Assembly (NCBI GenBank): GCA_965153285.1
Contig: OZ229112.1
Strand: one strand, 5' to 3'
DNA: 64,000 nt
Source of the DNA: Podarcis tiliguerta
Taxonomy: Eukaryota
Positions 30,906-50,040 of this stretch are shown piece after piece. Made by a program: the position numbers and the translations under genes. The notes beneath the pieces were generated by a model. It had not been told where the DNA came from, did not search any database, and was given only the letters and a program-made list of their open reading frames with translations. Position 1 is the first letter of the stretch. Every line of letters starts with the position of its first letter.

Positions 30906-31308
30906 AAAGGTTATTAGAAACTGAACTTTGTTTCACGAACATCTTCTAGTTTAAGGTACAGACTCAGGTATACGTCTGTTGGAAAATAGCTATTGTGATT
31001 TTGAGAGGCTACCTTAAATAGACATTGTTTCCATCCCAAACATGGGCCTGAAATTGGATTTGAATGTATCCTAATTATCATCCAGAGCCATCCAAAACAC
31101 TCCCTCTCCTGTTTCTTTAATCCACGGATGGGGAAGCTATGGTTGTCTAACTCCAATCAATTCTTAACATTGGGGCTGATAAGAGTTGGAGTCTCAAGAA
31201 CATCGGAAAGGGCCACAGATTCCTCATTTCTGCTTTAATCTACTGTTGACCAATGCATGCAGCTGCTATACTGAAGAAATTATTGAGATGCTTATTTACA
31301 TGTGTTAT

Positions 31309-31314
31309 TTTATT
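31309..31314 (-). terminator. Candidate polyadenylation signal of ARMT1-A
   Basis: AATAAA on the minus strand about 375 nt after the stop, a similar distance to that in copy B. Confidence 0.5.
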
Positions 31315-31688
31315 AAATTTTGTCCAAAGCAGCTATAAAAATGTCTGCTAAAGAACTGTAAATGTAACATATAACACAAGGCAAAGTGCTGCACTGTAAT
31401 AACTAAAACAGTATAAGAAGACAGATGCAGGCAAACCATTAAAACATGCACTTCTTGACCCTACCCAAAAATATTTTAAGAATAGAGGAAAGATAGCCTT
31501 TAAGATGGTTCTGATACTTTAAGAATAACAGGGAAGGGTTTGTAAACTTTCACAATTGCACACAACTTTAAAAATCTGAAGATCTGTAGAAGAAAATAAA
31601 TAACATTAATATTGAACCCCAGTAAACCTTCCAATCTTAAACATCATAAACAGTGTTCATGAACAGTGCAATGCTTTACACAAGCCAA

Positions 31689-32450
31689 TCATGAAGCAGC
31701 ATCAAACTGAATTATTCCATATTTCCCAATGATCATCCATTCAGGTTCAGTTTTAGTAAGCTGTTCACCTTGCCCAGGTTTCAGCCCAACCTGGATATCA
31801 CATTTTAGCGTTCTTAAGCTACAGAGAGGGGCAGGGTGAAAATTGTTCAAGGCTTGATGGAACGGCACTGTGAATTCCCACTTCCGATCAGCTATCAACT
31901 TTCTGTAGTTCAAATCACCTTTAAAAACAATTAAATTTGACTTCTGCAATTCACTGTACAAATCAGGAGCCACTTGAGCCATCCTACAATATTCATGCGG
32001 CGAGGTCCAGAACAAGTGATCATGATAAATCCAAGCGCCATTTTTCAAATAGCCCTCCCAGCAGACACCACACCTAGACAACCCCTTGTGATTAGCTGAC
32101 TGCATTTGCTTAATTGTCCAATTCAGGTCACGCCTTGTAGTATCTGACACATACCATGGGATGCTTTTTCCATGGAAATGAATTTCAGTAGCTAACTTGG
32201 AGGATAACAAGAAGTCAGCCAGTATAAGGTCAGCAGTAAGTTCAAAACCAGCATTATCCAGGACTATGTCAAGTCTAGTAGTCTGCTTATTCATGTTCTT
32301 TTTGTTTATAAGCAGTGACCAAAGCATTTCCATGTGATCCACCAAGATAAAAGGTTTTAACTCTTCCACAGACAGTAATGGGTCAGACTTCTGAGAATTA
32401 TCTGCCCCAGCTGACATTGACAGGTCACACTTATTACCCCACAGAGAAAC
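31689..32450 (-). CDS. ARMT1: ARMT1-A exon 5 (catalytic domain, 762 nt including TGA)
   Basis: tttag|GTTTCT; encodes VSLWGNKCDLSMSAG...LDNAGFEL...GDLNYRK...RTLK...QFDAAS*. Confidence 0.97.
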   Translation of the reverse strand, partial: VSLWGNKCDLSMSAGADNSQKSDPLLSVEELKPFILVDHMEMLWSLLINKKNMNKQTTRLDIVLDNAGFELTADLILADFLLSSKLATEIHFHGKSIPWYVSDTTRRDLNWTIKQMQSANHKGLSRCGVCWEGYLKNGAWIYHDHLFWTSPHEYCRMAQVAPDLYSELQKSNLIVFKGDLNYRKLIADRKWEFTVPFHQALNNFHPAPLCSLRTLKCDIQVGLKPGQGEQLTKTEPEWMIIGKYGIIQFDAAS

Positions 32451-35400
32451 CTAAAGAAGGAAAAAGTACACCTTAATCTGTATGCCAAGTGATCCTTGCT
32501 CTACTATACACCATGTGCATCTTCGAGGACTGCAGTTGAGGGGCTACTGAGAGTTCTGCTTGTTGTAACAGGAGAAAGTAGGTCAGAATTGGAGTATTTC
32601 TTTTTACTTCCATTGAAACCAATGTGAAAAGGCAGTGGGTTAATTCCCAAGAGGCAAGTATAACATTAATAAAATTTAATAAGAAATGTAAGAAAAATGA
32701 GAATTAATCCACTTCTTTTGACCTTGAACAGGCTTAGGAAGTAGCAGTTTCTCTGCCAAGACGCACTTACTGTTCTTTCAGGTTCCAATCCACTAAGCTA
32801 GGGAACCTCAGGCTCAGGGGGCCAATGTGACCCTCCAGTTCTCCTTCCTCCTTCTAATGTGTTATGTATGAAACACCTGTTAGTGAAAGAACGTAACTAG
32901 TGATTTTGGGACGCAAACCACAGAGCCTAGGACTTGCCGATCAGAAGGTCAGTGGTTCGAATCCCCACAACGGGGTGAGCTCCCGTTGCTCAGTCCCTGC
33001 TCCTGCCAACCTAGCAGTTCGAAAGCACGTCAGAGTGCAAGTAGATGAATAGGTACCCCTCCGGCAGGAAAGTAAATGGCATTTCCATGTGCTGCTCTGG
33101 TTCGCCAGAAGCGGCTTAGTCATGCTGGCCACATGACCCGGAAGCTGTACACCAATGCTCCCAATAAATCGAGATGAGCTGTACGCCAATAAATCGAGAT
33201 GAGTGCCGCAACCCCAGAGTCGGTTACGACTGGACCTAATGGTCAGGGGTCCCTTTACCTTTAACAAGTGATGTTACAGAAAAGTTGAGGCCAAAGTGTA
33301 ATTAATATAGTTTCTGCTGATGCATTTAGCAGTTTTCTGCAGATGGGTTATATGATTAATCTCTCAGTATAAAGCAGACTCCTGATTTAGCTAAGAAGGG
33401 ATGGGGAACCTGTGGCCCTCCCAATGTTCGACTTCTAACTTCCATCATCCCCATCAAACATGGCCAATATATGTGCCTTCCTGTAGCCCTATTTCATTTT
33501 GGAGAGGCCTTTAAATGTTGTAGAAACTTTCTGAACCTTCTCTCTCACAGTAAAAGCTGTGGCAATATTTTTGGCAGCATGCCCTAATCAGGTTTTGGCA
33601 AAGGAGAGATCAATACCTATGAATTAATAGTTTGGCAAACTACAAAAACAAGAAGCAAGCTAACGATAATAATTGATATACTGTTTTCTGAAGAATCATC
33701 ATAGGAAGGTATGTGTATGACTGAGAATAAATGCCAGAAACTCTCCATAAAAATATTTTTGCCTTAGTTGTTAAATCCACTATGTGCATGGAACAGATTT
33801 GGGGTTCCATGTATTATTCCAGGTCATTTGTCATGCTTGTTTCTGGGTCTCAGTAGTAACTGAGGTTTATAAGATAGGAACTCACTTAAAATGATTCTGA
33901 TGGCCTGAATAGTTTCTGAACATATTATCACTAATGGTTTCCATTAGGTCATATTTGAAACTAGATATTTAAACTGGATTTTAACATTACAGAATATGTG
34001 CAACAGATAAATTATTTAAACAAAAAGTACTGCCAATTTTACCTGTAGCAGCTTCAAAAATTCTTCCTTCAGGGATTTTTCATCTAGGCCCTTTATGTTT
34101 TTCAACAGCTCTTGTAGATAGGTGCTTAAAACAATAATAGCTTCCTGAGATTCAAAGAAACCATGATCCTTTTCTTTTTTAAATACATCATAGTCACTGA
34201 TGGGTGGACTAAACAGAAGGGATAGAAACATAATAATACATTAGTCTTTGACATCACTAAATGCCAAAAACTTTCTCCCATAGCCGTTGCAGTCTCTGCT
34301 GAGACTGTAGTATGTCATGTCTAGTATGGTGCTGTGGGATCAATGTAAGCTGATGGGGCCTGAAGATGTGGACACAGTCATGGGTGTAGCAAGGATTTAT
34401 GGGGGGGGGGCAGAACCTCGGTTAGTTAAGTATTTTTATTGATTTACTTGCTCGGGGGGGCAGTTGACCCCCCCCCGACTACACCCACGGACACAGTGCT
34501 TGCAGCAGTGTGTTCAAGCTCTCTTGACAGGATAGGTTCAGAATGTAGCTCACAGTTCTCTGTATAAGGGTCCCAGGTGTCCTGAAGGAGAGAGTAGTGT
34601 GGTCACTTCCTCTTTTTTTTTAAAGAGATTTTCTTGTGTTACAAAAGAAACAAATAAATGGGGAAAAGTACATATAGCATCTCAGTTTCTGAGCCTTTTT
34701 CACAGTTCATTTACATTGTGTATGAGACACTGTCATTCTAGAAATGCAGTTGGGGGAAAAGAGAGGGGAGAGGTGGAACAATAACGTTACAGTGGATGCT
34801 CAGGTTGCGAACGTAATCCGTTCGGGATGCACATTCGCAACCCACAGTGGCGGGTCTGCACATGCATGGGTTGCGATTCGGCGCTTCTGCACATAGCACG
34901 ATTTAGTGCTTCTGTGCATGCGCGACCGCTGAAACCCGGAAGTAACCCCCTCCAGTACTTCTGGGTTTCGGCAGTCCGTAACCCCCCCCCCAAAAAAAAG
35001 CAACCTGAAGCATCTGTAACCCGAGGTATGACTGTATTTTGTTCTATTGCATAGCGTTTGTGTATGTTATCATGTCAGCATCATATGGGTAGAGCTTTTA
35101 TTTGTACATTTAATTTTTATTGGCATTGCGAGAGAGGGTCCAGAGCCTGGTTGGTTGCATTCAGTTGGTTTCAGGATGGTTTGTTTGTGAGTGTGAGGGT
35201 TGTTGGGTCAGGTTAGTCATATTTCATATGCTGCTTGTGGAGGGGATAGGTTGTTGTCTTGTGCTGTGTATGTGATAAAGGGGAACCACTGGGATGAAGG
35301 CGTCACTCTCCACTTGATAAGAGTTGTGTGCTGCTGATGGAAAGCCTGTTTAAAAACCTATCTTGGCTGACTATAGCCTACCAGGCCAAATTCACAGTTT

Positions 35401-38400
35401 TACTGTTAGTATATAGACCTAAACAGCTTGGAATCAGCTGACTTGAGGAACCACCTTTCCCCATATACCTGATATTTTAAGTTGGAGATGCAGCTAAGGG
35501 TTCCATGTTTGTGTTGCTTCTACAAGACAGAAGGCATTTAAGCATGATTGCACCTAGGTTGTGGAACTCCTTGCCTATTACTATTAAGCAAGCACCATTG
35601 GTACTTTGTTTCAGCTGCCTATGTTAAGACTCTTGTTGACACAGTACTTTTCTGCTATATAAAGTAACTCAACTGTCCAGTGATATGCAGTTTGCTGCTG
35701 GCAAACTATTTTTGTGTTGTTTTATGGATGTGTTATGCTCGCCACTGCTTACTATCTGTTATATAAACCTATGTACTTACTTCTGAGCGAGTGCCTCATG
35801 AATTCTACGATACATATAACACTCTGTATATAGCCAAGGAGACTGAAACCAGCTTGGTGGTCCATCTGATAATTTTTGATGATATTCTAAGCACTGGTTC
35901 CACAGAGTGGTGTCAGGGAGGCTGTCATTCAAGGCAGTCAGTGGCTTGTCTGCCTGCAGCTCATCTCGTAACTTGGTCAGAAGGACTATAACTTTCTTCT
36001 CTGCTTCAATACCTTTCTAAAATAAAGTAGGAAATTAATATTTTCAATCAAATGTGTGTGTTGATAAAACTTACTCCCCCCCCACAAAAAAACAAATCTT
36101 ATTTGATAAATAAAGTGCTTTCAGCACCAGAACAGCTATAAAAAGTCTTTTTCTCAGGAGTTCCTATCAAAAGTGCAAATCCAGAGGGCATAGCTCTCAG
36201 AGCAGGGAACATGACAAACAACATAGTATTTGAATTAAGCTGAAAGAACATTGGCATTGCTAACCTGTCTGTGATACTGGATGTTAATCAAGTAAATATG
36301 ATTTAAAGTTAGAAACAAATTTCTAAGATGGGGGTTGCCAACCCATGGGACATGGTGGTGCCTGAAAGACTTTAACTGGTGCCCCTAGACACGGTAAGTT
36401 ATAAAGGAAAATGTAGATATGCTTATAAGCAATTTCTGTGAAATGAGCAAACCTGGCTGCTTCTGTCAGGTGTTTTTGCTGATGAGTGAAGTCAGAGCTG
36501 TGGTTTGGGCACTAGGTAATAGGAATCCACAGTCTTAAAGAGAAGCTGTTTCTACCTCCCCTTAAATGTCCTTTTCCTTTTCCTGCTTCTGTCTTGTTTT
36601 GTGTGCAAAACTTCAACAGATTAGGCATGCAGTCCTGGGAAGTTTCAGTGTGATTGTATCCTTAATTTTGTGTTATGCCATAGCCACTCCCATAGCAGTC
36701 ATGTTGCTATATTACACCTCCCATGGTAGCCATTTTGTGACAGGAACCCCCAGCATGGTCTCAAAGTTAAAAACTTAAGGCCAATGAAAATACCTGGCAG
36801 CAGATTCAGGACAAAAGAAAATGCTTGTTCACACAAAGCATATTTTATTGATATCACTGCGCACAATATGTGACTGCCACAAGTTAAATGGCTTGAATGG
36901 GAATGGCAAATTCATGGGGAAGAAAAGTCTTATCACTATCTAATAGTAACAATGGCTACAGAGAACCTCCATGTTCAGAAACAGTTATGCTACTGCAAGC
37001 CAGTTGATAGTGAAAGGCAGTGGAAGTTGCCTATTCCCTTCATAGTATCTAGTTTGCCACTGGAGAAGCATAATGCTGGATAAGACAGATCTCTGGTCTG
37101 ATCTAGCATGGCTCTTCACAAGTTCAAATGAAAGCTGATGTTTTCTAGGCATTTGAAACAATTATCAAAAGGTACAGGAAGACCTAAGATTTTCAATAAA
37201 ATATCAAGAGAGAAAAGGTCAAATATACTTATTTCTTACTTCACCATGTTCTTCAAAGAATTCATTTTTATGTTGCTCCAGATTATTGATAACTCTAGTC
37301 AGGATTATTGGCAGCTTGTCTTTAATTGTATTGTATGCAAAGGATCTATGAAGAACAAAATATTATATCTATATAATATCTAAATGTATTTGTATTGTAA
37401 TGTATCCTTTTCTTAGGATTTAAATATTTTTAATATCTCAACTTTCTCCCTGTGTAGGACCCAAAGTGGCTCGCAGCATAAATTAAAACATACAACTAAA
37501 AACATAGTTATAAAGAAACATTCCCTGCATAGTCTGCTTCCTAAACACACATCACAGTAGGGTTGGTTGGCCCATTATGGAATATAGAGCACTGTCCTAT
37601 CATCGTCTTGGCTCCTGCCTTCTAACATAGCCAGCCCAGGGGGTGGACCTGGTTGTCAGTTTCCTCCTCCTTAGCCTCAGTGCTTTCTTTGTGGAGTTTG
37701 GAAGTAATGCGAATGGGTACAAAAGTAGGATTAGTTGGTCTCCCCTGTCATTAGCTTTACCTACTGTTGGCTCCCTACCAGTCATCAGGTCAGGAATAGA
37801 ACTATTAACGTCCTATGTGGACACTTCCACATAGCAGTTTCTGGAGTGAAAAAACAAAAAGCCAAAACTATTGGATTTTCCAAAAAAACCGTAAATTCAT
37901 GTTAAATAGGGAAATACCTTGGTACATTTTGATGTGGCTGTGAGGATTCAGGTAAGGAGCACAGTGTGCACATCACACTGCTGTATGGAAGAGCCTTCAT
38001 TCCCTTCATCCAACTGTCATTTCCCAACTGTCACTCCATGCTCCCTCCAACTCTTATATTCTAAGTTGTTTTTATTATCTGTATTCTAAAACGATTCGTT
38101 TTTCTATTGTTTTAATTCCCTTACACTTTTATTAAGATCATTTTTGCAAGTTTTTAGCTTTTCATATTTCATCCGCCTTGTTGTCATTTGTGCAAGCCGC
38201 TTTCAATCCCGGTCGGGGGGGGGGGAGGGGAATATAATAACAACTGTCCTGTTGAACACAGTGGGATTTATGCCATGAGAGAGAAAACGCTTACGATGCT
38301 CTTGCTAGTCAAGGAGCATGGAAAAGTGATTTAAGATAAAATCTTATTAAAGCCTTGCGCGAAAAAGGAGACTTTGGACACCGGCCATGTGCCCAAAGCA

Positions 38401-38577
38401 AACGTGGCACAGGAGCTCAGGGTCTTGGTAAGAGCGGGAGGAAGACCCTGGAAGAGACCTGGACACACGCTCCCTCTCCCAGCCCCATTTCGCAGAGCCC
38501 CAACGAAGCGGCGGCACGCACCCCTTGAACTTGCCCGCGAGCTGAGGCGGCAAAGTTGCCGCCACCGGCGCCGCCAT
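31689..38577 (-). CDS. ARMT1: ARMT1 paralog A (downstream tandem copy), DUF89-family damage-control phosphatase, 441 aa
   Basis: Exons 38577-38522, 37345-37240, 36016-35781, 34208-34043 and 32450-31689 (1326 nt, open, all GT-AG). Motifs present: ECYMYRRI, LWGNKCDLS, VLDNAGFEL, PWYVSD, FKGDLNYRKL, RTLK. Confidence 0.95.
32908..33263 (+). mobile_element. Sauria SINE (lacertid/Podarcis-type) in ARMT1-A intron 4
   Basis: GGGACGC start, B box GGTTCGAATCC, body matching the recalled consensus, CCTTTACCTTTA tail, degenerate TSD aactagtgatttt/aacaagtgatgtt. Confidence 0.93.
34043..34208 (-). CDS. ARMT1: ARMT1-A exon 4 (166 nt)
   Basis: tttag|TCCACCC...CTACAG|gtaaaa; encodes PPISDYDVFKKEKDHGFFESQ...FLKLLQ. 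Confidence 0.95.
34379..34489. mobile_element. hAT-type MITE
   Basis: TIRs CATGGGTGTAG / CTACACCCACG; 8-bp TSD GACACAGT. Confidence 0.85.
34790..35034. mobile_element. Tc1/mariner-pogo MITE
   Basis: TA|CAGTGGATGCTCAGGTT...AACCCGAGGTATGACTG|TA; related to 56801-56985. Confidence 0.85.
35417..35630 (+). mobile_element. L2 LINE 3' fragment
   Basis: gacctaaacagcttgga...gcacctaggttgtggaactccttgcct. Confidence 0.55.
35781..36016 (-). CDS. ARMT1: ARMT1-A exon 3 (236 nt)
   Basis: tttag|AAAGGT...CAGAA|gtaagt; encodes KGIEAEKKVIVLLTKLRDELQADKP...WLYTECYMYRRIHEALAQ. Confidence 0.95.
36796..37120 (+). mobile_element. Degraded CR1 3' fragment in ARMT1-A intron 2
   Basis: ggcagcagattcaggaca...ttcacacaa...caaattcatggggaagaaaagtc...ctggtctgatctagcatggctcttc. 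Confidence 0.7.
37240..37345 (-). CDS. ARMT1: ARMT1-A exon 2 (106 nt)
   Basis: catag|ATCCTTT...GGTGAA|gtaaga; encodes SFAYNTIKDKLPIILTRVINNLEQHKNEFFEEHGE. Confidence 0.95.
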
Positions 38578-39040
38578 TTTGCTCACTGAGGCGCCTTCCC
38601 GGCACGCCACCCGGCGCAGCTACGCGCTTTCCCAAGCAACGCCTGTTCTCATTGGTCGGCGGGTGTGTTCCCTCGCGCAGCGGCCTTAGAAAGGGAGCAG
38701 AGCGAAGCAGCTCCTTCGGTAAGGAGGCAGAGAAGAGGGGCGGGGGGCGGGGTTGATGTAGAGGAGCGGAGGATCCTCCTTCTCCCCCCGCCTCGGGAAA
38801 AAGAAAAAAAGGTAACAGGTCTCGTTCTGAGTGGCTATTTGAGATGCGCGCGCATGGAGACGGCTCCGATTAAAGCGCCCGTCCCAGGACTGCGGCGGTT
38901 CCCCTGAAAGAACTTCATCTGTCCTCTTCCGCCCTCACTAGGACCAGGCACAGCTGGCTTCCGCCAGCAATCCTTGGCGCTGAGTAGCTGCGGAGCGAAG
39001 AGACGCGAAGTGAGCGGGGGAGGGGAGGGAGTTGCGACTG
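38480..39040. promoter_or_regulatory. CpG-island promoter of ARMT1-A (duplicate of the ARMT1/RMND1 bidirectional promoter)
   Basis: CpG-rich. YY1-type CCGCCATTTT at 38571-38580, CCAAT box at about 38651, GC boxes at about 38737-38752, NRF1-like TGCGCGCGCA at about 38845. Alignable by eye to 49310-49860. Confidence 0.8.
38522..38577 (-). CDS. ARMT1: ARMT1-A exon 1, coding part
   Basis: AAAATGGCGGCG start; encodes MAAPVAATLPPQLAGKFKG; donor GG|gtgcgt in phase 2 fits exon 2. Confidence 0.9.
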
Positions 39041-40279
39041 TAGGTTACAGCTATTCCTAAAAAGTAAGCTGCAGAAGGTAGTTAGGATTCTTGTGTATAT
39101 TCTATAACCGCAGATTTACAAAACGGGACACGCAAGGGAGAAGGGACCGAGAGGGAGAAGAAAAGAAAAATTTAAACTCAGGCGCCAATTCTTAGAACAG
39201 TTGTTCTTATAATGACCAGCTGGCACAATTGATGGGTAGGAGGTGCCTGATAGAGCTAGGCTTTCAACAAAGCTGATGATGGAAGGAACCTTCTGCCTCC
39301 CAGCTCGCCCACTGAGACAGTTTGGTGGAATGGCTACACTAAGGGGACAGTTGAGGAAGAGGATGGAGCCAGAGCTGGTCACAGCAGAGCCAATGGAGTG
39401 AAGTGCTTCTAAATTATATATGCAGGCAGCTACCTTTTTGTGCACCTCCAACTGATGCATGACCCCCAACACGTGTTGTTTTCAGCACTGGAACAGGCTT
39501 AAGTGCAACCACAGACAGGGAGTTGCTTGTCATTAATGGCTCAGTTTAGATTATCCCATGTAGTCAGTATCCCTGAACAAGAGTCTGGGCTCTGCAGTAG
39601 ACTTAAAGCTTAAGATCAATCTAGGCAAGACAAACTTGGAGGAAGAGGGACAGACTATACAGATGAGGAAATATTGGTCCTGGGTGCATACTCTTTTTTA
39701 AGGATGAAGGAAGACCCTTGGACCTGAGATTGTTATTGGAGAACCAGGTGGCAATATTAGCTGATTCTTAATAATTACAGGAACAGAAAATAGATATTGT
39801 CACTGTCTCAGTGGCAGGGAGGTACAGAGGTGACAACCCAACTTAGGTGCTCGTGTAATTTTGTACTGTTTGCATCCTAATGGACTCCAACTAAAGAAAC
39901 CACTGCCAGACCACAATTTTAGCATCAATGTGGGTGTACTAGAGGGAATGTTGAAAATCCATTTTGATTCTACACTTAAAAGATAAAGCTGCTTGACTAT
40001 CCTTGCACCATGACTTTGAGGAGGTCCGCTGATAGATGCTGGTGTTGGAAAAACAAGAGCTTATTGGGATTGTGGGACTGTTTCAACAACTGAAAGTACA
40101 ATTGAAAACCCAGAATGTATCTAGAATTGTGTAAGATGACTGCACCTGAATACCTTGTTGTATCATAAACCCATCTACTCAATAGTACTAGATTAATTTA
40201 TAATAATCTAAAGCATATTATACCATAAACTGTTTCACAAGTCTCGTTCTTTAAAATGCGGACTACAGTAGTGTGTGTA

Positions 40280-40582
40280 CAGTGGTGCCCCGCAAGACGA
40301 ATGCCTCGCAAGACGGAAAACCCGCTAGACGAAAGGGTTTTCCGTTTTGGAGGTGCTTCGCAAAACGAATTTGCTATGGGCTTGCTTCGCAAGACGAAAA
40401 TGTCTTGCGAGTTCCTGCGGGGTTTTTTCCCTCCCCCCCCTTTTCCCCAAGCCGCTAAGCCGCTTATCAGCTGATCCGCTAATAGCGCTAATCCGCTAAT
40501 GGGCTTGCTTCGCAAGATGAAAAAAACCGCAAGACGAAGAGACTCGCGGAATGGATTCTTTTCGTCTTGCGAGGCACCACTG
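40280..40582. mobile_element. Tc1/mariner-pogo MITE with reiterated GCAAGACGAA motifs
   Basis: 22-bp TIRs CAGTGGTGCC(C/T)CGCAAGACGAA; TA TSD. Confidence 0.92.
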
Positions 40583-41202
40583 TACTTCTCTTGGGAATTC
40601 ACTGTTGTGATTTCATAGACTGCCTAACCAAATAGACAAAAACCACTCTTGGATATTCTTAGCAGCACCAAAGTGGCCTCACTGGAGCGCAGACCTGAGC
40701 AGTGTGTACGAAGGTCCCTACCCCCCATTGTTGACCTCGCTGATGTAGTCCAAAGGAAAATAGAGCGTACAAGGTGCCATCCAACCCAATGACAATTGTT
40801 TTCCAACTAAATAATATAACTGCCTCCCAAATGCTTAAGCAGGGTAGGGAAGGCCCTTTCCTCCTCACATTTTCCTCTCCTATCTGCTGCAACACTCATC
40901 CATTGCTAGATCTCCTCCTCTGCAATTAATGAAATTACTACCTACCCCATCTCTCAAAGCGCCTGAGCGTAAGCAGGAAGGGGAAAATGGGAATGGGGTC
41001 TCACCCAATTGCCAATAATCATGTCAGGGCAAAGCCTTCCATCTCTATTTGTAGTTAACCACAGTGCTACTTAAAGCATAGCGTAGCTAGCAAGTGGAAA
41101 AAGGTGTTCCTTATATGCCAGGTTACTTATTTAAACTACCACCAACTGATGCAGATACCTCTTATACTGGAGAAAGAATTCAAGTCAATCCATTTGAATC
41201 CA

Positions 41203-41212
41203 TTTATTTATT
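41203..41212 (-). terminator. Candidate polyadenylation signal of ARMT1-B
   Basis: Overlapping AATAAATAAA on the minus strand about 390 nt after the stop. Confidence 0.5.
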
Positions 41213-41597
41213 TAAGCTAATCTTGACCAGAGAGGTTCAGGCAGCTTAAAAGTAAGACTTGAGCTACAGAAAAGCAAAAATTTTTAGCAAATCAAAGTGC
41301 AATATTTTGCCGTTAATGTTAGAATAGAGGTCAGACAAACCGCAGCTACTAAAGCTGCTCTCAGTGTTTCCTCTGTCAAGTATTTTTTACTTATAAATAT
41401 CTAAGAATAATGACATTTTCGTTTTTTAAGACCATGAATACCAGAAAAGGGTTTGTAAAATGTCACAATTGCACACAACCTTAAAAATAGCAGTAAGACC
41501 CGTAGAAGAGAACATGCACATTGAAAGCCAGCGGTCTTTCAACCTTGACCAACAAAAGCATTTAGCACAGCCCTGTCCTTTAAACTTTGCATATCAA

Positions 41598-42359
41598 TCA
41601 TGAAGCAGCATCAAACTGAATTATTCCATATTTCCCAATGATCATCCAATCAGGTTCAGTATTAGTAAGCTGTTCACCTTGCCCAGGTTTCAGCCCAACC
41701 TGGATATCACATTTTAGCGTTCTTAAACTACAGAGAGGGGCAGGGTGAAAATTGTTCAAGGCTTGATGGAACGGCACTGTGAATTCCCACTTCCGATCAG
41801 CTATCAACTTTCTGTAGTTCAAATCACCTTTAAAAATAATTAAATTTGACTTCTGCAATTCACTGTACAAATCAGGAGCCACTTGAGCCATCCTACAATA
41901 TTCATGCGGCGAGGTCCAGAACAAGTGATCATGATAAATCCAAACGCCATTTTTCAAATAGCCCTCCCAGCAGACACCACACCTAGACATCCCCTTGTGA
42001 TTAGCTGACTGCATTTGCTTAATTGTCCAATTCAGGTCACGCCTTGTAGTATCTGACACATACCATGGGATGCTTTTCCCATGGAAATGAATTTCAGTAG
42101 CTAATTTGGAGGATAACAAGAAGTCAGCCAGTATAAGGTCAGTAGTAAGTTCAAAACCAGCATTATCCAGGACTATGTCAAGTCTAGTAGTCTGCTTATT
42201 CATGTTCTTTTTGTTTATAAGCAGTGACCAAAGCTTTTCCATGTGATCCACCAAGATAAAAGGTTTTAACTCTTCCACAGACTGTAATGGGTCAGACTTC
42301 TGAGAACTATCTGCACCGGCTGACAGTGAAAGGTCACACCTATTGCCCCACAGTGAAAC
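41598..42359 (-). CDS. ARMT1: ARMT1-B exon 5 (762 nt including TGA)
   Basis: tttag|GTTTCA; encodes VSLWGNRCDLSLSAG...LDNAGFEL...GDLNYRK...RTLK...QFDAAS*. Confidence 0.97.
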   Translation of the reverse strand, partial: VSLWGNRCDLSLSAGADSSQKSDPLQSVEELKPFILVDHMEKLWSLLINKKNMNKQTTRLDIVLDNAGFELTTDLILADFLLSSKLATEIHFHGKSIPWYVSDTTRRDLNWTIKQMQSANHKGMSRCGVCWEGYLKNGVWIYHDHLFWTSPHEYCRMAQVAPDLYSELQKSNLIIFKGDLNYRKLIADRKWEFTVPFHQALNNFHPAPLCSLRTLKCDIQVGLKPGQGEQLTNTEPDWMIIGKYGIIQFDAAS

Positions 42360-45300
42360 CTAAAAGAAGAAGAAAAAGTACACAATCCCTGTGAGCTGAG
42401 TAATGCCTTGTTGCACTACCTATCACATATATTTAGATTCAGATTTAACGGCACACTTGAAAAAGCTGGATTCCCAGTAGTCAGCTGTTTAGCAGAGAAG
42501 AGCGTCTGAATCAATCTCCTTACTTCTGAACAACTGATTGAGGGGATTCAATCTTACTTTAAAAATATCAACTACCTTTGTTGGATTAATCTGGGGAACC
42601 ACGCACACAGCACCCATTTACATAAGCTATTCCATATCACGATAGGGTTAAGGATAGGGATATGGACACTGAAGCCTCCTTCGAAGTACATATATCCCTT
42701 ATTTAGAGCAGGATGCTGATTTATGTGGGGGGGGGGGGGAATCATTTTATTATTTATTCAATTTATATTCTGCCGTTCCCCAACCCAGGGCAGCAAATCA
42801 TCTTCTGAATTGTGGAGCACAGCTAACTCCCAAGTTTCTAAATTCAAAAGCAAAAACTACATCCATCATACTTTAGTCTCAAGTTTAGGTAATGTTTATT
42901 AGTTTTCAACAAATGAGCATCACATCAATAACTTTGTCAGGACACCAAAATCAGGTTCCAATGAGGGATAAGTGACAACAGATTATAAGTGAGAGAAGAA
43001 AAACAGAAGGAATGTAAATGCTATTTTGTGAAAGATAATCAGGGGAAGCCATGGGTATAGCAGAAAATAAATTTCAGAGAAATTAACATCTCAAAAACAT
43101 CTATTTCAGAGCTGTGAAATAATTATGTGCATGAAAAAGAATTATGTGCTTGTTTCTGTGCCCCAATATTAGAACTGCAGCCAATGATATAAGAATTTTA
43201 CTCACCGTTTAAAACAACATTGCAGAGAACAGTATATGAGTTGTTGAAGGATCTCAACTTTCTTACAATTATTCTGCTGGCATGGAATAATTTTTCAACA
43301 TTTCTTATCAGAAATGTGATACGTCTCCTGTTTTACATTAGGCCATCTTTGAAACAAGAAACTTAAAAATTATAGAATATGTGCAACATTAAATAAACAG
43401 TAAGTATTAATAGTTTTACCTGAAGCAATTTAAAAAATTCCTTTTTCAATAAATTTTCATCTAGCTTCTCCACGTTTTTCAATATATCTTGCAGATAAGT
43501 ACTCATTAGAATTATAGCTTGTTGAGATTCAAAGAAATTGTGTACCTTTTCTTCTTTAAACACATCAAAGTCACTGATGAGTGGACTAAACAGAAAAAGG
43601 GGAAAACATTAGTTTTTGACCTTAATAAATACTGAAGACCACATCCACATGTTGAGCTCCCCGCCCCGCCAATTGCTTACCCTGTGACATGGTGCTATGT
43701 TGTATACTTCCACACCCCAGCTCAAAGTCATTGGCCTCATTCACAAAATGCTAAGCCAAACCACTGCTAAATATACATAAACAAGTATACTTGTGCAAAA
43801 CTAGGGCACTTCACTCCTTCTTGGGTCCTGCTGTTGCTCCGCTATTGGGAGCTAAGCCATGGTTTGGCTTAGTGTTACCTGTGAATCTTGGCTTGTGGTT
43901 TGTCTCACTCCAAACCTTAGTTATACAGCTCATTGTCTGTCTAGAGAAAAACAAGCTAGGAGCACATTTGCACATAACCCTAAGCCAAACCATGTCCTAG
44001 CTCTTGGTAGTGTAGCAGCAGCGGGAGGAGTGAACTACCTGTGGTTTCCTAACCGCACTAGCACATTTGCTTATTTATGTTAAGCCACGTTTTGGCTTAG
44101 GGTTATGTGTGAATCAGGACACAAAATGTAACATGTAACACTCAGCCAAACCATGGCTTAGCTCCCAATAGTGTAGCTACAAAGAACAATACGAAGTTCA
44201 ATCCTTAGTCAAACAGGTTTAATTTTACTATGTAAATGTTAGAAAGGTGTTTGAGAACAAATACAAAAGTTCTCAGATTCTCCCTGCCCCAGCTCATCAT
44301 ACTTGTAGCATTCATCATAAATACACCAATCCCTCCCACCACTACTCTCTTTTTTTGGCCAAGAGCAGAAAGCAAGAATGTTTAATCTGCAGTTCATATT
44401 TACCAAATAAGATGCATGCACTAGATAAATAAAATCAGAAGCTGCCTTCTACATTGGTCCAATGTAGTTCAGTACTGTCTACACTGACTGGCAGCAGCTC
44501 TTCAGACAGAACCTTCCCATCCCTACATGGAAATGCCAGAGATTGAAACTGGGAGCTTCTGCTTGATAAGCAGATGCTCTATTACTGAGCTGCCGTTGTT
44601 CCCTATTACCCAACTCTGACCAGTGGTTTGGTTGTGGTACACAAATGCATGAGAAGGAAACAATAGCTTGAGTTATAAATATACCAGGAATATTTCATAT
44701 TTTTTCCTCCCTTATTAACACACATGGCCCCTGTCTAATAAAAATGATAGAAATACAGAAATCAAATATCTGAAGTTGTTCAATATAGAATGTTTCTTGT
44801 TATTTAAAATAATTAATTCATAAGCAAAGCACACATTTCTTGACATTTTAATGAGCTTATACGACCTTTTATAGAGAAACAATTCCAAGCAATAATATAT
44901 AACAAATAAACATTGTAATTATGAAACACATAATGGTTTCAAAATTGAAACGAACTTTACATTTTTTTCTTCCCAAGAAACAAGGTATTCCTTCATCCTT
45001 CCAGGAACATGAGAAAAGAATGTTAACAATGTTTCCCTCATCATTTCAATGTCATCTGATAGGACTCCACATGCAATCTGTACTCCAGATTTGGGTAACT
45101 ACTATATCCTGAGGCACTGTATAAGCTGTGAAAGTGGGTTATAAGTTACGTAAATTAATATAGTTATTCTTCACACATTAACTTTACAGTATTTTTCAAC
45201 TGATTTTTAAATTTTATTTGATGGCTGTTTTTCTATGGGTGGGGTTCAAAAAAGAAAGTAGCCAACAGTTTTTGTTTCATTCAATTAAGCTGTAGGCTAA

Positions 45301-48300
45301 AGTGAACAAATCACTTTACAGGTCTATCATTAATCAGAAAGCAAAGGAAGAAGAGAATTACAAGGACTTCAAAATTTGTAGCAAGAAGTGACACTAAAAT
45401 TCCAACTTGTAGTTATACTATACCTACTAAATTAGGTTTTGAGGTGGATTAGAAAATATTTAAAATGCATGAAATAGACAAGAGTCACTAGGAAGGAACA
45501 AAGTTCACCTTCCCCAGTCTTCAGATGTTCCACTGGCACTCTGCTGATCTGTGTACCGCATAGCAGATTTCAGAGGAAATAACCGAAGCCCAGAAATGGC
45601 TGTTGGAGTCCTTCACGGGATGGTGTCTATTTACCCAAACTGCTGCTATGTTGCTCTGGCTCTTGGTGCCAGATGCAAGAGGCAACTATCACTCTGTTGC
45701 TGACTAGAAGTCAGGAGAAGGAATAAAAAAAGGAAAACAGCTGGCACTTAAGATTGAGTTATTTTCTCTGTTTTACCTTAAGCTTGAACTTTATTTCCCA
45801 ATTCCCCATCCCACAGACGGAAACGATACATAAGCAAACAACACACATGCTTACTTTTGAGCAAGTGCCTCATGAATTCTACGATACATATAACACTCTG
45901 TATATAGCCAAGGAGACTGAAACCAGCTTGGTGGTTCATCTGATAAACTTTGATGATATTCTAAGCAATGGTTCCAGAAAGTGCTGTCAGGGAGGTTATC
46001 AGTCAAGGCAATCAGTGGTTTGTCTGTCTGCAGCTCATTCCGTAACCTGGAGAGATAGGCTATAGCTTTCTTCTCAGATTCAATACCTTTCTAAAATTAA
46101 GAGAAAATGAAGAGATAAACAAATGTTTTCAATCTGAATGTTTTGTTCATAAAGTTATGAAGGGTTGCAATAACTTGACTGAATTCCAAACAAAAGTGCA
46201 AGTCCAGAACCCAAGTATCAAACATGACAACCAAATGCTTTAGTCCATAGGTAGGCAACTTGTGGCCTCAGGGCCTAGGGTGACTGAGACGTTACAGGTT
46301 TATAAACTTATGCATGGCATGGGAAAAGTGGACAGAGAATTCTAGAACTTAGGGTCATCCGGTCAAACAGATGGCAGCAGATTCAGGACAGAAAAGTACT
46401 TGGTCACACAAGGAATAATTTATGTAATTCACTGCCAAAAGTTGTGATGAGGGCCACTAGCTGAAAAGGCTTGAATGGAAAATTGAGACAAATACATGGG
46501 CCACTAAGGATACTGGTCTTTAGTTTGTGCTAGCAAGGCTCTTTGTATGTTCTTATGGAAGCAGAAAAATATTTACTTAAGCATGCAGAAATAATTACAC
46601 AAAGTTTGATTTGCTTAAGGTTTTTAAGAGAACAACATTGAAAGAGAAAGAATAAAAGGCAGCAATTTCTTACTTCTCCATGTTCTTCAAAGAACTCATT
46701 TCTGTGTCGATGCAGAGTATCAATAACTTTAGTCAGGATTAGAGGCAGCCTATCTTTAATTGTATTGTATGCGAAGGATCTATGAAGAAAAAAACAATAT
46801 TGTTTTAGGCTTGTAAATAGCCACTTCCATCACCATCAGAATCACCATCAGGCAACTTTATTAAAGTTACCGTATTTTTCGCCCTATAGGACGCACTTTT
46901 TCCCTTCCAAAAATGAAGGGGAAATGTGTGTGCGTCCTATGGGGCGAATGCAGGCTTTCGCTGAAGCTTGGAGAGCGAGAGGGGTCAGTGCGCACTGACC
47001 CCTCTCGCTCTCCAGGCTTCAGGAAGCTATCCGCAAGCTCAGCGCCCCCCAGGCTTCAGGCTTTGCGCAGCTCTCCCACGGCTTGTGGAGAGCTGCCTGT
47101 TCTGGGGGCTGGGGTTGGGGGAAGCTCGGGCTTCTCCCGCCCAAGCCCCGCGCCTGGGGGAAAATAATTTTTTTTTCTTTATTCCCCCCCCCAAAAAAAA
47201 ACCTAGGTGCGCCCTATGGGCCAAAAAATACGGTAATTTCTACACAGAAGGAGTAAACTGCTGTGTTCAGATATCATGGTAACCCATAATTATGTTGGCT
47301 CACAAAGTGAGCCTCGCCTCCTCCCAATCTTGCATACTCCTTCCCTCCCTGTTGTAGATAAGACAAGCTTAGAAAGTTTTACTTCCATTTTCAATAAACC
47401 AATGCTCATCTTCTTGCTTGAACTTGACGAACTGGTTAAACTTTGTTTGAAACATGCCATATTTAAGATTAACCACCATTTATGGTCGTAAAAAATTGAA
47501 ATTAGAAGTGAAAGCTTCCCATCACCGCCTTGTGGCTCTGGAGGAGAAAGAGCAGAGGGAAGGAGCCCAGGTCTATTATTCTTATACACAATAAATTATG
47601 GTTTATCATGATGTCTAAACACAGACTTTTTCTAAACCTCTCATACCCCTCCACACCACATCTCAATGCAAACACAGTATTTATCACACTGAAACATTGA
47701 AGCCATTAAGATTTTGCCCAACTGATATGCAGTCCTAAGCAATACACTGATTCCATATATGAAAATTAAGCAGAAATATTACTTCCAAGTGTCCAGACTT
47801 GCAGGGGAAAAGTTTTGTGGTCTTAATCTCACACAGTTTACCATGGAAAACATCTTCATATGTACACAGCAACTTTCTTAAACCATGTCCCAGACCAATA
47901 AGAACTTGGTCAAATAAGCTAAATACTCTAATTCATATCTAAAGGATGGTATTTATGACTCTGGGTAACACTTTTAATAATCTTTATCTTAAAACCAAAA
48001 TGTCAGTCTTCAAATATTCATTGGAAGCCGCCTAGAGTAGCTGGGGTTACCCAGTCAGATGGGCACCATATTATTATTATCATTTCTTTACTATTAACAA
48101 ATAAACAACTTAGTTCTCTTCAAAAAAGAGGAGAGAGGGAGACAATGCCTTGTTTCTGATGTCAGTACATCTGAATTATTGTCTAGAATAGTAAGAAAAT
48201 GTATGATTTGTTAATCAATAGCAATTCAAGTATTATTGCTGGGTTTCACAGTAGATAAACATATTTTCAAAACTGGTTTACATAGAACTGTACAGTTGGA

Positions 48301-49387
48301 AGGGACCACAAGGATCATCTTGACACCCCCTCCCCAAGCCCTTGCACTGCCTTCCCAAAGCAAAATAAGGAGGCACTTGGCTTTGGGAAGGAGGCATGAG
48401 GGCTCTGACAGGGTCCTAGAGCTCTCACGCCTCTTTCCCAATGCCTAGTTAGCACTTCCCAGCTTTGAGGAGGCAGCAGGGCTCTAGGACCCTGCCAGAA
48501 GGTTATGGTGTGTGTCAAATTTTGGCCTCACTACACCCCCCCCCCCAGCGCCCCACCTCCCATGACAAGCAGCATGCAGCCCACAGGTTCTGTGTCAAAT
48601 AAAACTGCATGGTTAAAATAAAATGTAATACGCGAGAATACAAACATATTGATTAAATAGTCCTCTGTCAAAGACATTGCTCAAATCATGATCTGGACAT
48701 CTCAAACTTAGCTTCACATACGCTCTGTTCCTCTGACTTAACTTCCGGGTTTTGCCTCAAGCCTGAATTGGAAACTCACTTCTAATTCTGGCTCAGAGAC
48801 ACGTATGGCTTATGCTTTGTTGCGACGTAATAGAAAACTTGGTTTTGCAAACCACCGAGTGATTTGCAGAAGCAGGGAAGACTTGAATACTCGAAGTACG
48901 AGGGGTGGAGCGGAACCCAACCACCCACTGACAGCCGAAAAAGGCCACTGTGTTCCTGGATTCTGTTGCGAAACCTCCCTTTCCCAACCAGAAGTGGTTC
49001 AAAGGGCGGAGAACAGACACCCCCCTGAGACCGCAAATGCCACCCTCCCAAATAATTCGCGGGGGCAGCTCCGAATCTGGAAGCCGGCTTTCCGTGCAAA
49101 GCGAACTGGGGCTCGGAGGAAGAAGAGCAGAAATGGAAAACAGCGGCTCACTAGAGTGCCGCGTTTTCAGCCGCCCCGGCTCTCCGAGCGAGGAGGGGAA
49201 GAGACCCGGACATAGCTCCCTACCCTTGTCCCCTGGTACTCTACAGCTCCAGCCTCCCCGCGAATGGCCGACGGTTCACCCCTCGCCCACCCATTTCTCA
49301 GAGCCCCCGACGAAGCGGCGGAGACGGGACGCACCCCTTGAACTTGCCCGCGAGCTGAGGCGGCAGCGTTGCCGTCGGCGCCGCCAT
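41598..49387 (-). CDS. ARMT1: ARMT1 paralog B (copy head-to-head with RMND1), 440 aa (443 aa if the in-frame ATG at 49396 is used)
   Basis: Exons 49387-49335, 46779-46674, 46090-45855, 43585-43420 and 42359-41598 (1323 nt, open, all GT-AG). All DUF89 motifs are intact. Confidence 0.96.
43420..43585 (-). CDS. ARMT1: ARMT1-B exon 4 (166 nt)
   Basis: tttag|TCCACTC...CTTCAG|gtaaaa; encodes PLISDFDVFKEEKVHNFFESQ...FFKLLQ. Confidence 0.95.
43734..44120. mobile_element. Degraded palindromic MITE with AAACCATGGCTTAG-type repeats
   Basis: Ends ggcctcattcaca / tgtgaatcaggac; internal inverted taagccaaacc/ggtttggctta motifs. Confidence 0.6.
44437..44603 (-). mobile_element. Squam2-type SINE
   Basis: Reverse complement resembles 30720-30905 (head agctcagtaatagagcatctgct). 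Confidence 0.75.
45855..46090 (-). CDS. ARMT1: ARMT1-B exon 3 (236 nt)
   Basis: tttag|AAAGGT...CAAAA|gtaagc; encodes KGIESEKKAIAYLSRLRNELQTDKP...ECYMYRRIHEALAQ. Confidence 0.95.
46290..46502 (+). mobile_element. Degraded CR1 3' fragment in ARMT1-B intron 2
   Basis: tatgcatggcatgggaaaagtggacagaga...ggcagcagattcaggacaga...gacaaatacatggg. Confidence 0.7.
46674..46779 (-). CDS. ARMT1: ARMT1-B exon 2 (106 nt)
   Basis: catag|ATCCTTC...GGAGAA|gtaaga; encodes SFAYNTIKDRLPLILTKVIDTLHRHRNEFFEEHGE. Confidence 0.95.
46870..47233. mobile_element. Tc1/mariner-pogo non-autonomous element (CCGTATTTTTC ends)
   Basis: TA|CCGTATTTTTCGCC...GGCCAAAAAATACGG|TA. Confidence 0.9.
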
Positions 49388-50040
49388 TTTGCTCATCGTA
49401 GCGCCGCCCGGCGCAGCTGCGCGCTTTCCCGAGCAACGCCTGTTCCCATTGGTTGGCGGCTGGGCTTCCTCGCTCAACGGGCTTAGGGAGGAGGGGCGCT
49501 GCAGCAAACCAGCCCCTTCGGTAAAGGAGGGCGGGCGCCAAACGAAACGCGAGGCCTTGGGGGTAATCGCCTCCTCAGGAGGAGGCGGCGACCTTCATCG
49601 GCGCTCTGGGGCGGGGAATATGACGTCGCGCGTCAACCGCACAGACGGAGGGGGCGGGGCTGACTCTGTGGCTCCGCCGGCCCTCTGTGGAGAGAGCGGG
49701 TCCTCCTCCCACCTCGTGCTTCGGCGCCAGGTTGGTAAAAGGCTCCTGCGCGTGGAACTGGGTCTTCCTCTGATTGGATGGTGTTTGGGGAGCGCGCATG
49801 GGGCAGAGTGCGAGCGGAGGGGGGGGGGTCATTCCTCCCGCACCCGCTTAAAACGCCCTAATACTGTGATCGTCCCCTGCGGCGGGTCGCCTCTTGCGCT
49901 CGCAGTATGGTTCCCAGCGGAGTCCTTCCCCGCAACCTTCCGGTCTTGTTAGTGGGAGGGATGGAGGCAGCGCTCGTATAGCATGAATGCGGAAAGCGGT
50001 GTGGGTTTCACCTTTAATTTCACCTGTCACCTGGGCGCTG
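48800..50040. promoter_or_regulatory. CpG island / bidirectional promoter shared by ARMT1-B and RMND1, including the probable non-coding RMND1 exon 1
   Basis: About 1.2 kb of CpG-rich sequence. YY1-type CCGCCATTTT at 49381-49390, CCAAT box at about 49448, CRE-like TGACGTCG at 49621, GC boxes. Candidate plus-strand donors CAG|gttggt (49731) or TTG|gtaaaa (49735). Head-to-head layout as in mammals. Confidence 0.85.
49335..49387 (-). CDS. ARMT1: ARMT1-B exon 1, coding part
   Basis: (ATGAGCAAA)ATGGCGGCG; encodes MAAPTATLPPQLAGKFKG; donor GG|gtgcgt. Confidence 0.9.

Follow-up and report, generated by a model that had tools for sequence, protein, structure and literature searches.

Old tandem ARMT1 genes of the lizard Podarcis tiliguerta and the probable homogenisation of their exon-5 catalytic core by interlocus gene conversion

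Introduction

In the 64,000-nucleotide stretch of contig OZ229112.1 from Podarcis tiliguerta (assembly GCA_965153285.1), referred to here as the window, two intact ARMT1 (DUF89) genes of five exons each lie in tandem on the minus strand. The two genes are very probably old tandem duplicates in which the catalytic core encoded by exon 5 has been homogenised by interlocus gene conversion. As judged from the comparison of sequences between species, the core has been homogenised independently at least twice, once in the lacertid stem or later and once in the lineage of the amphisbaenian Rhineura floridana. Conversion of the C-terminal core had been proposed in a first-pass annotation made from the letters of the window alone. 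The proposal is supported by the contrast in synonymous divergence (dS), the old flanks of the homogenised tract, discordant trees and diagnostic sites.

Results

The tandem duplication, with a unit of about 10 kb, was found by a repeat scan and by BLAST of the two halves of the region. The two genes were delineated by tblastn with lacertid proteins and by their canonical splice sites. The ARMT1-like gene (441-residue type) is named copy A and the ARMT1 gene (443-residue type) is named copy B. Exon 5 consists of 762 nucleotides (nt) and is located at 31689-32450 in copy A and at 41598-42359 in copy B. Because the genes are on the minus strand, its last 708 nt have the low coordinates. These 708 nt (31689-32396 against 41598-42305) differ between the copies at 11 positions, whereas the first 54 nt of the same exon differ at 8 and exon 4 is 76.5% identical. 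The counts in the first-pass annotation were thus reproduced. The recomputed differences are 3 synonymous and 8 non-synonymous, as had been stated there. Its argument that constraint at the protein level cannot explain the identity is correct, but the synonymous share rests on only 11 sites. The suggested comparison of dS along the genes was carried out by exon with the Nei-Gojobori method. The dS values are 0.41 for exon 2, 0.19 for exon 3, 0.94 for exon 4 and 0.52 for nt 1-54 of exon 5, against 0.021 for nt 55-759 of exon 5 (705 coding nt). The synonymous divergence of the tract is 20-40 times below that of the rest of the same genes. Exons 2-5 hold 100 coding differences in all, and only 11 of these lie in the 708 nt, although this segment makes up 56% of the sites (binomial p=8e-21). 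Synonymous differences number about 3 at 144 sites in the tract and about 37 at 116 sites elsewhere (Fisher p=1e-11).

The near-identical tract is embedded in older homology. The intron upstream of exon 5 is barely alignable between the copies in a direct alignment. On the other side, identity drops 3 nt past the TGA, to about 50% just after the stop codon, in agreement with the collapse into a diverged 3' untranslated region (UTR) noted before. However, the copies realign at 80-89% some 110 nt deeper in the 3' UTR (31523-31575 against 41436-41488). Therefore, the UTRs are old homologues and not unrelated sequence. The 3' UTR and downstream part of copy A (31300-31685) is old-diverged from 41200-41594 of copy B, and its A-unique contigs are at single-copy depth. 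The surviving homology patches are 31523-32471/41436-42383, 33879-34218/43256-43595, 35776-36055/45850-46126, 37231-37366/46665-46800 and 38472-38727/49280-49530. Old homologous sequence is found on both sides of the tract, where the exon 5 start and the 3' UTR patches align at 77-89%. Therefore, the tract does not represent a younger segmental duplication.

The limits of the homogenised tract could be placed closely. It extends over 31686-32373 in copy A and 41595-42282 in copy B, with 10 differences in 688 nt. In copy A it comprises exon-5 codons 27-253, the stop codon and 3 nt of the 3' UTR, and encodes residues from about 215 to 441. Exactly the same limits are given by short-read contigs, in which the paths of the two copies merge at 31686 and 32373/32374 and loose contig ends match 41565-41594 and 42365-42394 of copy B. 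The first 77 nt of exon 5 (32374-32450 in copy A, 42283-42359 in copy B) are unhomogenised in lacertids, with 9 differences, as indicated by alignment, dS and cross-species residues. All lacertid A copies share the A-specific residues M12, N18 and L26 of exon 5. The difference at nt 77 (codon 26, L in copy A and Q in copy B) is fixed between the paralogs in all lacertids and therefore lies outside the tract. On the other hand, codon 33 has a lacertid-derived state common to both copies. Nt 78 and nt 97 of exon 5 therefore bracket the stable 5' edge. This edge is not universal, because the two Rhineura copies resemble each other at the beginning of exon 5 as well (1 difference in 18 residues).

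In order to follow the two parts of the genes across species, proteins were compared. Both paralog types are present in the databases for P. raffonei, P. muralis, P. lilfordi, Zootoca vivipara and Rhineura floridana; for Lacerta agilis the B type alone was retrieved. Searching with the N-terminal 188 residues of protein P0001 detected no A-type cluster beyond lacertids and Rhineura among the annotated proteins of teiids and other squamates, and only a B-like protein in Salvator. Within species, the identity of copies A and B is 73-80% over exons 1-4 but reaches 95-98% in the tract. Between lacertids and Rhineura, the identity of the tract is 88-89% in every combination of copies. The N-terminal tree was built from full-length database proteins, with exons 1-4 of the window excluded, and the tract tree includes both copies of the window. 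In the tree of exons 1-4, Rhineura A and the lacertid A copies form one clade (support 100/99), and a forced clade of Rhineura A and B is rejected (approximately unbiased (AU) test, p=0.0099). In the tract tree, Rhineura A and B are sisters (94/88) and all eleven lacertid copies form one clade (100/99). Forced monophyly of the A copies costs 74.7 log-likelihood units in the tract (AU p=1.8e-8). The diagnostic sites reflected the same discordance. Exons 1-4 hold 12 paralog-diagnostic sites and 1 lineage-diagnostic site, whereas the tract holds 0 and 15, respectively (Fisher p=4e-7). Among these 15, the lacertid state is the derived one at 9 and the Rhineura state at 4. The discordant trees and the diagnostic sites therefore place the duplication before the split of lacertids and Rhineura, and the core was homogenised independently in each lineage. 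The clustering predicted by the first-pass annotation was thus observed in part: exons 1-4 group by paralog and the tract by lineage, lacertids against Rhineura, but the lacertid tracts among themselves could still be grouped by paralog.

The exon 5 frame of each copy matches Pfam PF01937, the domain of ARMT1-like damage-control phosphatases, with 206 and 205 bits at a curated cut-off of 25. It aligns to residues 187-439 of the 441-residue human DUF89/ARMT1 (PDB 6UMQ) with E=1.7e-120. Both window copies carry LDNAGFE, VSDTT and NKCDLS. By this domain match and the conserved residues, each copy is a putative ARMT1/DUF89 subfamily III phosphatase. For the understanding of the tract at the protein level, an AlphaFold model of the P. 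raffonei A protein was obtained from a 36-sequence alignment (predicted local distance difference test 87.5, predicted template modelling score 0.90). In the model, helices make up the whole of residues 1-193, residues 194-211 are a low-confidence segment or lid, and an alpha/beta domain with all seven strands occupies 212-441. In the fission-yeast DUF89 structures, the WGN motif is immediately followed by a mobile lid of three helices. An aspartate of this lid, D195 in the human protein, contacts the metal, and an Asp-Asn-Asp set in the core binds the metal (PMC9062747). By the roles described there, the lizard equivalents are D197 for the lid and D253, N254 and D291 as predicted metal ligands. 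D197, N254 and D291 are invariant in the alignment and D253 is nearly invariant. Exon 5 begins at residue 189, and its first 77 nt in copy A encode the final part of the last N-terminal helix together with the beginning of the lid, in which D197 is located. With the tract starting at about residue 215, the homogenised part is therefore, according to the model, the whole alpha/beta core with the predicted metal site. What stays paralog-specific is the predicted helical domain at the N-terminus and the predicted lid in its first half. The earlier picture of a shared core with two different caps agrees with the model, in which the division between the predicted helical N-terminus with its lid and the alpha/beta core coincides with the tract.

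The tract was independently examined in Logan contigs of two independent short-read sets of one organism (X1 and X4), which were aligned to 31300-32700. The depths of the contigs unique to the flanks of copy A are 11.4 and 9.3 in X1 and 11.8 and 7 in X4. In X1, the contigs with loose ends matching the flanks of copy B have depths of 10.1 and 8.45. Between the merging points, X1 gives one contig with a depth of 19.9, roughly double that of the flanks. The merged part of X4 has a depth of 21.9-26.5 and is interrupted by one unresolved two-armed stretch at 31710-31821. All six alternative letters within the tract in X1 are the B letter at known A/B sites, and two private variants are additionally present in X4. 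As a separate observation, the collapsed tract contig of X4 (31792-32373) has a depth of 26.5 against about 7-12 for each unique flank, which is nearer to three copies than to two. At a coverage of about 9x this may be noise, or the individual may carry extra copies.

Expression was examined with raw reads of one stranded RNA run (X24) from a P. muralis-like organism. On exon 5, 57 reads were found, all in the orientation of minus-strand RNA and all with B letters at the diagnostic sites (for example 17/17 at 32234 and 9/9 at 31752), and eleven reads extend into the 3' UTR of copy B. In this one sample, within 31300-32700, no A-type read was found on exon 5 and none on the 3' UTR of copy A. 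The orthologues of Podarcis and Rhineura are 85-87% identical for copy A and 85-86% for copy B. The intact reading frame and this conservation equal to that of copy B argue that copy A would be a working gene, maybe a tissue-restricted one. Another run (X17) enters intron 4 of copy B at high depth and resembles capture or genomic DNA; it was dropped as evidence of expression.

The remaining exons were located by tblastn and splice sites, and protein P0001 was the query for exon 4 of copy A. All of them are on the minus strand. In copy A, the coding part of exon 1 is at 38522-38577 with the ATG at 38577, exon 2 at 37240-37345, exon 3 at 35781-36016 and exon 4 at 34043-34208. In copy B, the coding part of exon 1 is at 49334-49396 with the ATG at 49396, its limits being those of the tblastn match with an approximate donor site; exon 2 is at 46674-46779, exon 3 at 45855-46090 and exon 4 at 43420-43585. 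Exon 2 is 84.9% and exon 3 is 89% identical between the copies. Exon 1 of each copy lies in a GC-rich promoter island, with a GC content of 0.63 at 38500-38999 (copy A) and 0.65 at 49000-49999 (copy B). At the position of the first ATG of copy B, copy A has GTG (38586-38577 against 49396-49387). Copy A starts at the second ATG, which partly accounts for its 441 residues against 443. Exon 3 has the lowest dS among the N-terminal exons, and its nt 156-227 (35790-35861 in copy A, 45864-45935 in copy B) form 72 nt without any difference between the copies, whereas the preceding 143 nt hold 24. This stretch encodes the invariant SWFQSPWLYTECYMYRRIHEAL motif. It could be either a strongly constrained part or a small second conversion patch.

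The N-terminus of copy B is like that of outgroup ARMT1 proteins, and that of copy A is the diverged one. In a protein search, the nearest sequences to exon 5 of the window were the 'ARMT1-like' protein of P. raffonei (98%) and the 'ARMT1' protein of P. muralis (96%); the window proteins differ from those of every lacertid species compared. Exons of CCDC170 are located downstream of the pair on the same strand, as in the human neighbourhood. The NCBI models P0142-P0144 (749 residues, CCDC170-like isoforms from Lacerta agilis, P. muralis and P. raffonei) join exons 1-4 of copy B to CCDC170 exons. This predicted read-through omits both exon 5 copies and the whole of copy A, and all of its exons lie in the window on the minus strand (49396-43420, then 17589-17452, 11710-11522, 5853-5521 and 637-389). 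These models account for the labelling of the two ARMT1 genes as isoforms X12 and X13 of one gene. By tblastn, residues 528-558 of P0144, in its CCDC170 part, also match 2794-2886 on the opposite, plus strand with 81% identity.

Discussion

The results can be put together in the following scheme. A common ancestor of lacertids and amphisbaenians duplicated the whole ARMT1 gene in tandem, from the promoter to the 3' UTR, as a unit of about 10 kb. Copy B retained the ancestral position and sequence type, and copy A gained a distinct N-terminal helical domain. The introns, the UTRs and the short exons 1-4 then diverged freely. The long last exon has very probably been repaired against the other copy by non-allelic homologous recombination, which overwrote about 690 nt of the core, independently in the lineages of lacertids and Rhineura. 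In this way the core evolves in concert and the N-terminal domain by paralog. Conversion would need a few hundred bases of good homology, and exon 5 with its 762 nt would supply it. Exons 2-4 (106-236 nt) sit in unalignable introns and would offer insufficient homology. The edges of the tract would mark the loss of homology, which sets in with the 3' UTR at one end and with the diverged beginning of the exon and its intron at the other, and each round of homogenisation would renew the substrate and sharpen these edges. Selection for paralog-specific residues of the lid and N-terminus may also hold the 5' edge. A stronger form of this idea, in which exon length is only part of the cause of the confinement, selection keeps a paralog-specific N-terminal domain and lid (with the fixed M12, N18 and L26 of copy A) on a core that conversion keeps interchangeable, and conversion may still segregate within populations, is rather improbable. 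The single full-depth tract contigs of X1 and X4 would fit copies that are identical in those individuals. If this form of the idea were true, the pair would be a modular two-enzyme system kept since before the split of lacertids and amphisbaenians.

Three explanations of the near-identity without exchange between two old exons were rejected. Near-identical paralogous segments are a known risk in polishing, so that mis-mapped reads might have homogenised exon 5 copies which are truly more different. However, the paralogs are just as nearly identical in the tract in five other species, which were assembled independently, and the k-mer graphs of two short-read sets merge the paths of copies A and B over exactly the tract at about double depth. 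Much more different true copies would stay apart in the graph. Therefore, the merge and the recurrence of the pattern in five independently assembled species remove this worry, and an artefact is extremely improbable. No more weight can be given to a generally low substitution rate, or to nucleotide-level constraint on exon 5 such as an overlapping functional element. The core is indeed the most conserved part of the protein family, but 24-28 of 235 tract residues differ between lacertids and Rhineura, against only 4-12 between paralogs within a species. Besides, the fifteen lineage-diagnostic sites are fixed differently in each lineage and yet are identical in both paralogs, and monophyly of the A type was rejected in the tract. 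It might also be supposed that exon 5 was originally shared, exons 1-4 having been duplicated first as alternative 5' sets and exon 5 later, separately in each lineage. The treatment of the copies as isoforms of one gene in NCBI models, some of which skip both exon 5 copies, would suit such a history. On the other hand, the first 54 nt of exon 5 have a dS of 0.52, and the 3' UTRs align only in old patches of 80-89%. Exon 5 and its UTR were therefore part of the old duplication, with the young tract enclosed by old homology at either end, and it is very improbable that exon 5 was duplicated later and on its own.

A further question is how often and when the core was exchanged. The less likely account, although it deserves attention, is a single old replacement in each lineage, by conversion or double crossover, once in the lacertid stem and once in Rhineura. 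The copies would afterwards have diverged slowly, the shared private residues would be parallel changes, and all observations would be accounted for. It agrees with the best tract tree, which puts the lacertid A copies on one side of a branch, weakly (46/41). In the tract, the A copies of the window, P. raffonei and P. lilfordi form a clade (100/95), the Podarcis B copies form another (87/87), and the Podarcis copies do not group by species. Moreover, B-type reads and contigs of an organism with P. muralis-specific residues have 5-6 tract differences from window B and 11-12 from window A. Against a single old event, Zootoca has the private adjacent residues I129/S130 in both copies, P. muralis has the private A118 in both copies, and copy A of P. 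lilfordi has the B-like N233/D237. The two Zootoca copies differ at 4 tract residues, against 6-11 from their own orthologues. Also, a dS of 0.021 would be young for an event before the split of Zootoca and Podarcis, though it rests on 3 synonymous sites. These few lineage-private shared residues suggest that patchy, smaller conversions may have occurred later within lacertids. In the window lineage, the last tract-wide event appears to predate the split from P. muralis, and it would be much younger than the duplication (dS 0.021 against 0.4-0.9), though these dates are rough and rest on very few sites.

Interlocus conversion remains the preferred explanation of the pair, but several points weigh against it or against its frequency. 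The grouping of the lacertid A copies and the closeness of the P. muralis B reads to window B leave frequent or ongoing conversion unproven. The word recurrent used in the first-pass annotation stands for at least two independent homogenisations and was not matched by a grouping of the Podarcis tract by species. No clear excess of a GC-biased signature was detected, with a GC content at third codon positions of 0.43 in the tract against 0.31-0.42 in exons 2-4. Phasing of the 10 tract sites with Logan contigs failed, since these contigs are mosaic or collapsed and can drop variants. The cross-species test was made at the protein level only. Finally, homology length as the cause of the confinement to exon 5 is what we infer.

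The pair is a well-bounded natural case of domain-wise concerted evolution, in which two enzymes with one catalytic core have long retained different N-terminal and lid modules, independently in two lizard lineages. Trees or orthology calls based on the ARMT1 C-terminus will mislead in Lacertoidea, and the 'isoform' naming of NCBI conceals two genes. The pair also offers a natural domain swap for enzymologists who probe the roles of the N-terminal domain and lid in DUF89 proteins.

ARMT1 is single-copy in human. Like human ARMT1/C6orf211, a DUF89 subfamily III damage-control phosphatase (PDB 6UMQ, 6UMR), the lizard genes have PF01937, the D-N-D metal ligands, the lid aspartate and the CCDC170 neighbourhood. 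Unlike the human locus, that of the lizard has a second paralog between ARMT1 and CCDC170, which is intact and long-lived and whose N-terminal helical domain is divergent. Fission yeast also has two DUF89 paralogs in one genome, Duf89 and Duf8901, with a common catalytic core and a mobile three-helix lid whose aspartate contacts the metal (PMC9062747). That comparison served solely to locate the lid and the metal ligands in the lizard proteins, and no concerted evolution is claimed for the yeast pair.

No report of ARMT1 duplication or conversion in reptiles was found in the literature. The process is well known and the gene pair was previously undescribed; the knowledge of gene conversion itself is unchanged. 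Partial concerted evolution by interlocus conversion is established for the gamma-globin and alpha-globin pairs of primates, RHD/RHCE, and the red and green opsins. Further examples of conversion are reported for deer-mouse haemoglobin paralogs (PMC4379404), newt sodium-channel exons (PMC8476164) and ETCHbox genes (PMC8208926). Like such systems, the lizard genes are old duplicates with a young, sharply bounded tract of near-identity in coding sequence, with discordant trees of the tract and the rest, and with lineage-specific substitutions common to both copies. Unlike the known conversion pairs, the lizard tract is without a visible GC-bias signal, and the pair has persisted since before the split of lacertids and amphisbaenians, with the same domain homogenised independently in both lineages.

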